From NCBI GenBank assembly GCA_011109175.1, contig RDEW01000004.1, positions 163,976-227,975 of the forward strand: a DNA stretch of 64,000 nucleotides. The letters run 5' to 3'. Below, piece by piece: positions 11,105 through 29,030 of this stretch. The position numbers and the translations under genes were made by a program. The notes under the pieces were generated by a model. The model made no database searches and was not told where the DNA came from. It was given only the letters and a program-made list of their open reading frames with translations. The stretch comes from Dicyema japonicum (Eukaryota > Animalia > Dicyemida). Position 1 is the stretch's first letter. Each line of letters begins with the position of its first letter.

Positions 11105-11980
11105 TCATTGTGGGAGTTGATGAGACAGGTTGCAGAATGTGAGGAAGATGTGGTTGTCTGTCCAATAACATATGGAAAGTGTGCAGTAATGATCTGGTTT
11201 TTGGAGAAGAGAGAACCATAAGAGCAGCACGAGTTTCTCCCTTGAATAATTCAGTGTGTATTTACTCTCACATATGATTACGGGAAACTGCATAGTGGTA
11301 AAAGTCACTGCCTTCCAGAAGGGATCAAATGCAGTTTTTGATGTTATTAGAGACAGATGCTTTTCCATTCCACGCCGCGAGAGGAGAAATACTCAATAAC
11401 TTTACCAAATCAGATAGAGTTAGAAGGAGAGCGTTTTCAACTGTGGTCGAAAGGGTCTCAACTGCAAAAAGACGCGGATCCTAAAGTTTGAGGGGAAAAA
11501 CATTCCAAGATTAGGTTTAAGATTGATTCTGTGTAAGGAGGTAAAAAACTGGGTTCACTTAAACAGAGATGATGACGAGATGCTGTTGGCGCAACGGTGA
11601 TGTTATGGAGCTGAACGAGATGTCTTGTTAGAGACACAATGGGTACGGATACTTTCTCAAACGAAAATCTGCTAAGTCACCGCTGTTGCGGGTTTTAGAA
11701 CATTTAATCACGATCATGAGGGTATAATAGCACAATACCCCATTCACAAAGATTGACAAAGAGAAATAAATGCCCATAAGGACACGTAAAAAATATGCTG
11801 CTGGACGACCCGATTGGATACGACCACTCCACCCAACGCTCCAACGTGCAATGGAAGGTTGAGTAGAGGCACACCTGCCTTTATGATCACAAGTGCACAC
11901 AACCAAGTAAGTGAAATTTTTTGATATTGTGCTGCACATTGAATGCTCACATAATGGGTAATTTTGTTTGAGTTGATCAT
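11105..11980 (-). CDS. Hypothetical multi-exon membrane protein (several hydrophobic segments)
   Basis: Overlapping ORFs with hydrophobic runs (WLCALVIIKAGVPLL; LMGIYFSLSIFVNGVLCYYTLMIVI) and micro-intron-like GT-AG segments. Family not recognised; ends approximate. Confidence 0.35.
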
Positions 11981-14486: not shown

Positions 14487-17400
14487 ATGAGTTCAGCAAA
14501 AATTAAATTTGTAAATATTTTCGTAAACTTAGGCGATAAATAAATTTATAAATGAAGGATATCGACTCAACATAGCCTCTTCCATGACGCCAGTGTTGGT
14601 TAGGTTCGAGCCAAGGGGGGCTCTTGTCGTATTCTCTAATTTTGAGGAATCAAAGTTATACGAAATTAGTTTGATTTATCAATCAGTTTTAGTTGAATTG
14701 AACAAAATTAAGGAAATTAGATCAGACATTTCGGGAAGGAAATACGAAATGAAAGGTCTGGAGGGTAAGAATGGAATCACCATTGTTTTCGGGGACCGGT
14801 TTCTAACCAAGTTCATGTGGCTGAGTGGTTATCCATGTTTTTCACAAAAGGGGATACAAATTTATTACTCCACATTACAACTGCCTTGAAAGTATTAACC
14901 ACCAAAGTTGTAAATCTCAAAGCCAGAAATTTCACTCAAAGCGGCAAAAAGGTGATTCAGAGGTACCTTATTTCGATTTAGTAGGTGTGTGTACAAAGAA
15001 ATGAGGTCCCCAAACAGTCTAATACTCCTAAAACACATTGGGATAACTGATTCAGTCGTAAAGTCCTTTCAGTCGGTTGTTTTGTCATCCTTGGAATGTT
15101 TGAAAAGGGAAGAAAAGGTGGAAGTAATGGATCTTTTCGACAGTGTAAAAGATACTCAGGGTCAGATGGATGATCGTAATTTTTTGTGATCAAGTAACAA
15201 AAATTTCACTAATTTAGTTGTTGAAATTTTTTTTCCGATAATAATGATCTACGTGATCCAAAAAGTAACCTTATCCACCACAACATGAAGCGTCCACTGA
15301 ATGAATACTGGATTGCCTCTTCTCATAACACGTAGGATGATTGACCACGTTAATAGGTACCTCACCGGGGATCAGCTGATGAGTGAATCGACAGCAGAAT
15401 CCTACATTCGTTGTCTCCAAATGGGCAGTCGGTGTCTCGAATGTATACATGTGTATTTTATCTAGTGGACTGCTGGAATGGTCCGAACAACTTCCCAAGA
15501 ATCTACCATGGTCACACACTAACATCTAAATGCACCACCTTGGAAGTAATACAAGCAATAAACAGTCATGCCTTCACACATTCAAAGTAGGGATAACTGA
15601 ATATATAGTTTCCCCCTCATTCTATCCATTGAATGCCACTTGAATGTTTCTCAGCAAAAAGTCCTGGCCCAACAATTCAAAGATGTCTTTGGAGGTTCAA
15701 TTTTGTTTTAAAAAGATAAACTTTTAACAAGAAAAAATAATAAAAATGAAACTGAACTGCCCTCTCCTTTCGCCCTCAAACGTAAAATAATAATCAAAGT
15801 CATTTTCCTTGTCATTCAAAGAACAAGAAAATAACGACATTCTCTGAGTTTAACCCGATTGGAGTTGGAGACGAGGAGATGTCCAACCTTCACCTTGATT
15901 CTTACGGAATGATCAAGTCTCCAGGGGAAGATAAAGTTACTGGATTTGCTGATGTGTTAGAAATGGATAAAATGCTACTTTTTTCTTTCAAAACACAAAC
16001 TTATTTGGCTCTTTCACCCCGACAGCCCACAAATGCAGTTATTTCAAAAAACGGATGAATTCTGGGAGTTTTACGACAGAGAAATGTGGTTCCACGGATA
16101 TTTTGAAAATGGTTTCAAAACGGCCAATGAAATAATCCTTTCCTACATTTTTATGAAGGATGGGGCCTTCTTAATATACAACACTCAGGACTCCCTCATA
16201 CTAGGCATACTGTAGGGGTTCGAATAAGTGATTAGATCGAACAGAAAGGTGCATACTCTTCGGATTTTGCAAACCAAAGAATTTGCGTTTATGTCATATC
16301 GCCTGGAAAACCAAGACCAGAAATTCACAAACCTTTATAAAATGGTGGAGTTTTATCAGAACAACAAAATAATTATAAAACAGCAAAACGGTAATTTGGC
16401 AGTGAAATTAACGAAACCTATTCCTCAGGTAGAGAACCACATAGATTACAAGTTGTCACTTTGGGGGTTATTTTGGTGGTACTATCCCAATTCACGGAGA
16501 AAAGACATTATCAATATATTCGAGACTACGAGGAAGGAAGGGTCATATTTGCTGAGAAATGGAAAGACGCCTCAAAATTTAATCTTAAGTTTCTGGTAGT
16601 TCTCAATTGCGGAATTTAAGGGACTCTCAAAGGATCAGGAACATTAAAATATTGCGGGACACCAAATATTATAATATGGGGTCCCACCCTTACATCAATA
16701 TCACACAAATTGTCAAAAAATACTCAAATTTTCCCATTCACGGAGACACGTGTCTTTTATATCCCATCACATATGAATTTATCAGAAATTTACAAAATGT
16801 GATTATTTTCTTATATTGAGATGTGTGTGTACAAAGTGATCAGCAACCACGAAAGACCAAAGTCAAATGAACTTTATTTGAGGGTAAACGATCACGTGGT
16901 AGACGTCGCTGAGTCAAAAATTTATCCTGACTTGTATTTTGGTGATCAAAGGAATAGGTTGATTGGGAACCATTTATGTCAATACAAAGGCTATCTTCAA
17001 AAATCCAAGGTAGTCAGGGTCATCTCGCAAGATGAGGCCTACAATGCTATCCACGAAGCCAAAAGAAATTTTCATTTTTTGTATCTGAAAGATATCAAAT
17101 TGATAAAAACTAGTTTGGATTGATTTCATTTTAGAGGATGCGACAACTATAAACGTGGAGGTGCTTGAAAATGCCGAATGTCTACGATTCAAATTTTCTA
17201 GCAAAGATGAAGCTCAAATTTGGAAAGACAAAATAACCTATCTTCTTTCTGACCATGCAAAGGTTAATTTGAAAGGTGATTCCAGGAAAGTACAGAGGAC
17301 CAAAACAGTGACACCACTCATCAGCTTTCCAAGGAACTTTCAGATCTGATAGTGTATTGTTGTTCCAAGAAATTCGATCCAAACAGTACAGAATAGTATT

Positions 17401-18274
17401 AAACTCAGAGACATCTCTCAATTATAATGAAATGCATTCGCTTAGTGAAGGGAAAATACCAAAATTCTCGGACAAAATAGAAAAATATCCTTTTTAATTA
17501 AACTCAATATATTTTTATTTTCCTTAACATTAACAAGCTTACTAAAGAAATACTCATCCGCGTATATCCCAGCGGCATTAGAGTTGATTCGTCCAACTAC
17601 AACCCCTTGAATTGTTGGTTTTTAGGATGTCAGATGGTCGCTCTCAACTACCAGACGGGGGATCTTCCAATGCAGCTTAATCAAAATCTTTTTGCAGATA
17701 ATGGAAGGTAAAGATGTTTCTAACTCTTAGGTGCGGATATTTGCTAAAACCAGACATCATAAATGGGTTCAATTTGGATAAAATAACAAATCAGCCAAAA
17801 ATGACTTTAAAATACAGGTGAGGCACAAATATAACGATTAGGTTCTCTTCTTGATGAAAATGTTACCTGTCTTCTTTAAGTATGACCAAATCCTTTTTGT
17901 GAAGGTGAGGACCATTGGCTGTCCGTACGACTGTCACACATCGGTGATATCATTTAAAGGTCTCTTGTGGGTATGACAATCAGTTAGCGGTAAATTGTTA
18001 ACTTGGGTAACTTTAAAACCGATTAGTTTCATCTTGCACGTGCCAGAGCTGTCTTTCCTTCGCTTTGAAGTATACAAAAATCTTAACGACAAAAAATTCA
18101 TGGGGCAATCAACATATTCAATCAGCACAATCAGGACAGGTATGTGTTTCTTGGCGTATTTAAGGAATCCGTTGTGTCCCACTACATAATCAACACTGTG
18201 AGAGATTCAGCTTGGACAGACTCGTCGTGCACGTGGATATTAAACATATTGAGAATAAATACGTGGACATATAA
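14487..18274 (+). CDS. PLCG: Phospholipase C gamma (PH, X box, SH2, SH2, SH3, split PH, Y box, C2)
   Basis: IKEIR PH motif; [32 protein letters not shown] box; two SH2 and one SH3 domains; [35 protein letters not shown] box; C2 domain. 3' end taken at first in-frame stop and may extend further. Confidence 0.93.
17485..17542 (+). other. U12-type (minor spliceosome) AT-AC intron in PLC-gamma
   Basis: 5' ATATCCTTT, branch TTTTCCTTAAC, 3' CTTAC. Removal joins GAA AA|T AAA GAA ATA CTC ATC CGC GTA TAT CCC in frame ([10 protein letters not shown]) and removes in-frame stops. No GT occurs in the segment. Confidence 0.88.
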
Positions 18275-18551
18275 ATCGAATAAACTGTTCATATTACATT
18301 TATTACCAGCATATCCTACATGTCCAGATTATTACATGATTCTCCAAGTTCTTTCATTTTTTGGTTAGACGAGATTTGAACCAGTCGTTACTGCAACCAA
18401 ACTTTCTTTGTTAGAATTTCCTCTTTCAAGTGTCTCCCGAGTCCGTCACCTCGTCTAAGAGAACAAGGAAGACAAGGATCCATCATGAGGCTAAGTAGAC
18501 TACGATAGAGGTCCTTCGGACAACTAATTGACTAAATATTTTGAGAAAAAA

Positions 18552-28599: not shown

Positions 28600-29030
28600 T
28601 TTGAATTATAACAAATATATGGCGGAAAACAAATCAAGAATATAAAAAATGCATCATATCGACAGTGAAACATGCAGTAGGCAGCATAATGTATAGAGCC
28701 TGAGTAAAAAATATCTCTGTAGTTATTTCTTGAAAATGTATCAAGATGTCCCAAAAATTATGTTGATAAGTTATGCACAAAGAAAAGACTTAAAAAATTA
28801 AGTTTTAGACGTTGTTCAATGATTATTTATAAACCCTCAAAAGAGGACAAAAAATAGATATTCATTGATATCCCTACACACGGAAATCTTTAGTAAAAGG
28901 CGAAAGATTTATACGTTATGTGTAGAAAACAGAACAAAATTCAGATACAGGACAAACTTCCAAGTTATGAAACGAGCTGAATTTATGTTGCATTATGAAT
29001 TGATCTATTATTACTGGATGCTTTAAGATA
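28600..29030 (+). mobile_element. Possible Penelope-like RT C-terminal fossil
   Basis: Broken translation VGSIMYRA..I and IDIPTHG resembles PLE post-RT motifs; many stops. Confidence 0.25.

Follow-up and report, generated by a model that had tools for sequence, protein, structure and literature searches.

Introns of the U12 (minor) class have AT-AC or GT-AG ends and a branch adenosine placed about 10-20 nt before the 3' splice site. Those of the AT-AC kind, found in animals, plants and protists, share a whole set of properties with the segment that we describe here: a donor of the form RTATCCTTT, a TTCCTTRAY box near the 3' end (branch-site consensus from PMC8848931), AT and AC termini, the absence of a polypyrimidine tract, a phase other than zero, and a host gene that belongs to a family, that of PLC, in which minor introns are abundant. 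As many as 60% of human PLC family genes carry minor introns (PMC6865273), and Plcb2 and Plcb3 are both minor-intron genes in the mouse (PMC8848931). Typical animal minor introns, by contrast, are far longer than the 58 nt of the segment considered here. Very short ones are known from the protist Blastocystis, whose minor introns are likewise mostly AT-AC and measure ~42 bp on average (median 39 bp; PMC10639083).

Myxozoans are the only other animals with introns shorter than 30 nt, and they are counted among the animals that have lost minor splicing in a pan-eukaryotic survey of minor introns from which Dicyema and the Dicyemida are absent and which left out introns of less than 30 bp (PMC10639083). 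In the literature searched, no minor intron is reported from genomes whose major-class introns are ~23 nt long, and U12 is not mentioned in the papers on dicyemid genomes. The segment described below, which lies in a PLC-gamma gene of Dicyema japonicum, would thus be an intron of an ordinary kind (i.e., U12-type AT-AC) in a lineage where this kind has apparently gone unrecorded; dicyemids, in contrast to myxozoans, would then have kept minor splicing.

Results

The window, i.e., the whole stretch of D. japonicum DNA that was analysed, is 64 kb long, and all positions refer to it unless another gene is named. The segment and its surroundings comprise the following features:

14749-18189, + strand: host gene, PLC-gamma-like, with 19 introns, a CDS of 2964 nt, 987 aa and one terminal stop
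17386-17408, + strand: flanking U2-type GT-AG intron, 23 nt
17409-17484, + strand: upstream exon, 76 nt, ending in the AA of a split Asn codon
17485-17542, + strand: putative AT-AC intron of the U12 (minor) class, 58 nt, in phase 2, with the Asn codon divided as AA/T
17543-17707, + strand: downstream exon, 165 nt, starting with T; matches Pfam PI-PLC-Y positions 52-105 (E = 9e-24)
17708-17730, + strand: flanking U2-type GT-AG intron, 23 nt

The model of the host gene assumes that three 1-nt assembly indels are corrected: relative to contigs from each of the four Illumina DNA runs, the window has an extra T at 15180 and at 15227 and is missing an A at 17808. All three are homopolymer sites inside the PLC-gamma gene, and its reading frame is broken if they are left uncorrected; homopolymer indels are typical of a merged PacBio assembly. 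Separate exons of the gene match Pfam PI-PLC-X, PI-PLC-Y and SH2, the last with a score right at the cut-off (21.2 bits), and the model is collinear with residues 132-972 of a PLC-gamma protein (P0127, E = 4e-104) across the linker. The order of parts is that of PLC-gamma, with X and Y halves, a long SH2-bearing linker between them, and a C2-like part thereafter. GC content is ~36%. The 18 remaining introns are all GT-AG, range from 19 to 26 nt (median 23) and have hardly any conserved signal past their GT and AG, which agrees with published logos and descriptions of D. japonicum introns (PMC13644364; PMC2483917). The nineteenth is the AT-AC segment, whose length is 2.5 times the median of the major-class introns of this gene.

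Three elements within the segment (ATATCCTTTTTAATTAAACTCAATATATTTTTATTTTCCTTAACATTAACAAGCTTAC) correspond to signals of the U12 class:

17485-17493, + strand: 5' splice site ATATCCTTT, matching RTATCCTTT at nine of nine positions
17520-17528, + strand: branch-site box TTCCTTAAC, matching TTCCTTRAY at nine of nine positions
17541-17542, + strand: AC 3' terminus, in frame

The donor core is ATATCC and the core of the branch box is TCCTTAAC, and between the two boxes lies an A/T-rich spacer of 26 nt without evident function. As a whole, the segment is 81% A+T and contains no GT dinucleotide. The presumed branch A, at 17527, is 42 nt from the 5' end of the intron and 15 nt from the C at 17542, a spacing that together with the AT-AC ends falls within the range of U12-type introns. 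Other AC or AG ends 3' of the branch box (AC at 17534, AG at 17537 and 17547) are out of frame. All of the signals named in a preliminary description of this DNA (the 5' site, the branch sequence, the length of 58 nt, the lack of GT and the AC end) were present, the distance from branch A to the end being 15 nt. Read contigs from four DNA runs (X1-X4, all from one sample) span the segment with zero differences, and the sequence of the segment is therefore real; these runs are genomic DNA of mate-pair and paired-end type, having Nextera mate-pair adapters and being collinear with the window, without joints. A search of the 64-kb window for a second copy of the 58-mer found none, and an origin from a repeat or transposon was ruled out on this ground.

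The extent of an intron at this site is constrained by the reading frame. The frame of the upstream exon (13502+3k) runs into a TAA at 17495-17497, and that of the downstream exon (13500+3k) is open only after a TAA at 17499-17501. Given this change of frame and the two stops, an intron must cover 17495-17501, and its length must be 1 mod 3, as is the case for 58 nt. Excision of the 58 nt yields a stop-free junction: the predicted splice, 17484/17543, joins ...AAAATAGAAAA to TAAAGAAATACTC, and AA/T, in phase 2, rebuilds the N that is conserved in the Y-box motif NKxxLxRxYP. When aligned with 20 PLC homologues, the rebuilt N-K-x-x-L-x-R-x-Y-P matches the conserved [YFH]N.x.L.R.YP at every residue, and its N-to-P distance of 10 residues equals that of the homologues.

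Whether other excisions would serve equally well depends on which ends are admitted. In an enumeration over the region that was confined to pairs with recognised end dinucleotides, the in-frame GT-AG or GC-AG pairs were 17445-17547, 17445-17583 and 17434/17440-17572/17581, with lengths of 103-148 nt, and all of them remove conserved Y-box residues (the SxSE...NK part); an AA end at 17545 is also in frame, and the conserved Asn is lost with it. If end dinucleotides are ignored, there are 1453 in-frame, stop-free excisions, and several pairs with recognised ends also work. An HMM of the 20 homologues, scored on these 1453 excisions, ranks the 58-nt junction 400th; the homology score fails to single out the junction because the homologues are ~6 residues longer exactly there. 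Placement of the junction by homology alone was therefore dropped, the HMM being non-discriminating where the linker of the homologues is longer. The earlier claim that the frame is restored by no other excision thus goes too far, but this one is the sole excision with recognised, properly spaced signals that keeps the conserved residues. From the letters of the locus, i.e., the consensus signals, their spacing, the restoration of both frame and homology, and the want of a workable U2-type alternative, the segment reads as a probable U12-type AT-AC intron, as had been proposed.

Taken singly, the donor motif and the branch motif each occur in the 64-kb window at their expected frequencies. An 8-mer donor combined with an 8-mer branch box no more than 100 nt away and an end that matches is produced by chance at a rate of 0.027 per 64-kb window (40 in 1500 second-order Markov simulations), and a looser definition of the combination gives 0.11 chance occurrences per window. 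At 0.027 per window, chance combinations are to be expected somewhere in the 67-Mb genome, some tens in all, and the motif combination by itself makes a case for an intron that is suggestive. The case becomes convincing because the combination is on the coding strand, falls precisely where the frame has to change, belongs to the right length class and restores a conserved residue. Four other U12-like sites in the window, at 14555 (-), 24534 (+), 48155 (-) and 58906 (+), were rejected as being without coding context, and looser scans of the 64-kb window found no further U12-like motif site with coding context.

Intron positions were compared in six PLC genes whose proteins came from the HMMER search described below, three of them PLC-gamma (L001, L003, L006) and two PLC-beta (L005, L007), all five without an intron at this site; the PLC-gamma genes differ in this respect from their Dicyema counterpart. 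In L005, a U2-type intron lies 14 codons upstream of the site. The sixth, a fish gene (L002), encodes the protein P0139, whose best solved relative is PLC-beta2. At 16809-17110 of its own sequence this gene has a 302-nt intron of the U12-type GT-AG kind, starting GTATCCTTTTAAT and ending TTTTACTTAATAATTTAG, with the signals GTATCCTTTT ... TTTACTTAAT, followed after 8 nt by AG. This intron, in phase 2, lies inside the Glu codon of VE^YNKRQMSRIYP (the caret marking the intron), and with RxYP as the anchor the intron studied here (IEN^KEILIRVYP, also phase 2) lies 6 nt 3' of that position; a MAFFT alignment places an indel exactly at the offset between the two. This vertebrate PLC-beta2 minor intron thus shares with the Dicyema intron its location in the Y box, its phase, a position no more than two codons away in the alignment, and a donor of the U12 type with TTTTAAT after it, and it differs in its GT-AG subtype, its length, a degenerate branch box, its presence in a beta paralogue and the 6-nt offset. 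As to whether the site would coincide with that of a U12-type intron in other animal PLC genes, the answer is a qualified one: an intron of the same class and phase is present in the fish gene, but its position is not identical. The two could go back to a single ancestral intron that underwent a small shift or deletion, or could have independent origins, and we regard their near-coincidence as supportive of the U12 reading but not conclusive.

A separate observation concerns the annotation of the fish PLC-beta gene L007. Over positions 17500-18140 of that gene, the annotated protein P0115 joins ...KKPNSDE straight to FVEYNKK and omits two evident Y-box exons, the second of which is ERNKYFEMSSFVETKGMDTLKSAPIE. 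The public gene model looks wrong in this stretch.

An Rfam search of the 64-kb window for components of the minor spliceosome recovered no U11, U12, U4atac or U6atac gene, the only hits being U1 and U5. The U5 snRNA gene (28832-28937, - strand; RF00020, 80.9 bits, full length) is uninformative on minor splicing since U5 is common to both spliceosomes. The other hit (11755-11914, - strand) is a divergent U1 snRNA whose score of 58.5 bits (E = 6e-12) falls short of the gathering score, 69.5, and whose last stem is poorly paired; an identity as U11 was considered for this match to clan CL00005 and rejected, its 5' end, UCACUUACUUGG (ACUUAC), being that of U1.

Proteins of this organism were sought by HMMER, with the Y-box exon against 1.84 billion representative proteins, and by a word-index search that used the 69-aa ORF spanning the acceptor, and neither search returned one. 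One further run, X5 (2017, from another study), holds 12 M contig letters and contains a share of 0.65 of the words sampled from 16500-18300. The share expected for spliced mRNA is 0.71 if all nine introns are removed and 0.76 if the 58-nt intron is kept. With its share near that of spliced mRNA, the run may be RNA, and a value of 0.65 cannot separate removal of the 58-nt intron from its retention.

Discussion

The segment at 17485-17542 is very likely a real intron, of whatever kind, and from the sequence of the locus we consider it likely to be a genuine member of the U12-dependent class in the PLC-gamma gene, with the junctions given above. This suggests that an animal whose ordinary introns are ~23 nt long retains a minor spliceosome. 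Excision from the RNA, and minor snRNPs to carry it out, are what we infer for this organism. The mechanism, carried over from the established intron class, would run as follows: U11 would pair with the 5' splice site ATATCCTTT and U12 with the branch box TTCCTTAAC, the two acting as the U11/U12 di-snRNP; U4atac/U6atac.U5 would join after it; and the branch A at about 17527 would attack the 5' splice site, whereupon the exons would be joined at 17484/17543 to give AAT (Asn) and the Y-box sequence.

A possible alternative explanation is that the segment is a real intron with the same junctions that is removed by the major (U2-type) spliceosome, the minor machinery having been lost and the signals being relics. 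Fast-evolving, intron-reduced lineages often lose minor splicing, as in the case of the myxozoans with their introns of less than 30 bp (PMC10639083; PMC13644364), and the 64-kb window has no minor snRNA gene. However, two perfect U12 9-mers are unlikely to have been kept without selection in a genome where U2-type introns retain little beyond GT and AG, and the AT-AC ends and a length 2.5 times that of the other introns of the gene also speak against it. We judge this explanation to be improbable.

Still less probable is the use of another splice in the same region, either the GT-AG pair 17445-17547 (103 nt) or the ATATCC donor with the AA at 17545. Both options are in frame and stop-free, and AT-AA is a known, rare end pair of minor introns, which counts for the second. 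The first, however, would have four times the length of any other intron in the gene and would cost 16 residues, including the conserved SE of (S/H)SxSE and the N-K, whereas the second would lose the conserved Asn and place the 3' end 18 nt from the branch A. The least credible reading is that the segment is unspliced, belonging to a pseudogene or a mis-assembly in which the motifs co-occur by chance: the chance rate of the combination (0.027 per window) and the three 1-nt assembly indels inside the same gene speak for it, but the four DNA runs match the window over the whole segment, the rest of the gene when corrected for the indels gives a clean ORF of 987 aa in which X, SH2, Y and C2-like parts are present, and a chance motif would have had to fall on the coding strand, at the exact site of the frame change, to be 1 mod 3 in length and to rebuild a conserved residue.

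If the segment is a U12-dependent intron, as we favor, then its size invites comparison with that of the introns around it. The preliminary description had taken it to mark a size floor of ~58 nt for U12 introns. As a general limit this does not hold: the value comes from a single intron, and the minor introns of Blastocystis, with a median of 39 bp (PMC10639083), are shorter than 58 nt, which argues against a mechanistic floor of that size. Its length and the 42 nt between its donor and branch site are consistent, for this one intron, with a larger minimum for U11/U12. A more speculative extension, which we regard as rather doubtful, is that dicyemids keep a working U11/U12 spliceosome and that their minor introns resist miniaturisation, owing to a class-specific length limit that would stem from the di-snRNP having to bridge the distance from 5' splice site to branch site (42 nt here).

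The finding also bears on the annotation of compact genomes. Intron classifiers that drop introns shorter than 30 bp or assume GT-AG ends may break genes of this sort at their minor introns, and gene predictors trained on introns of 20-30 nt may do likewise.

If confirmed by RNA, the intron would be a first example of minor-class splicing in Dicyemida. Its significance would be raised by a genome-wide set with retained minor splicing and a class-specific length limit. Were the U12 reading true, extreme shrinkage of major-class introns would not require the loss of the minor spliceosome, unlike the situation in myxozoans, and dicyemids would offer a natural system for the minimum length of each intron class inside one nucleus.
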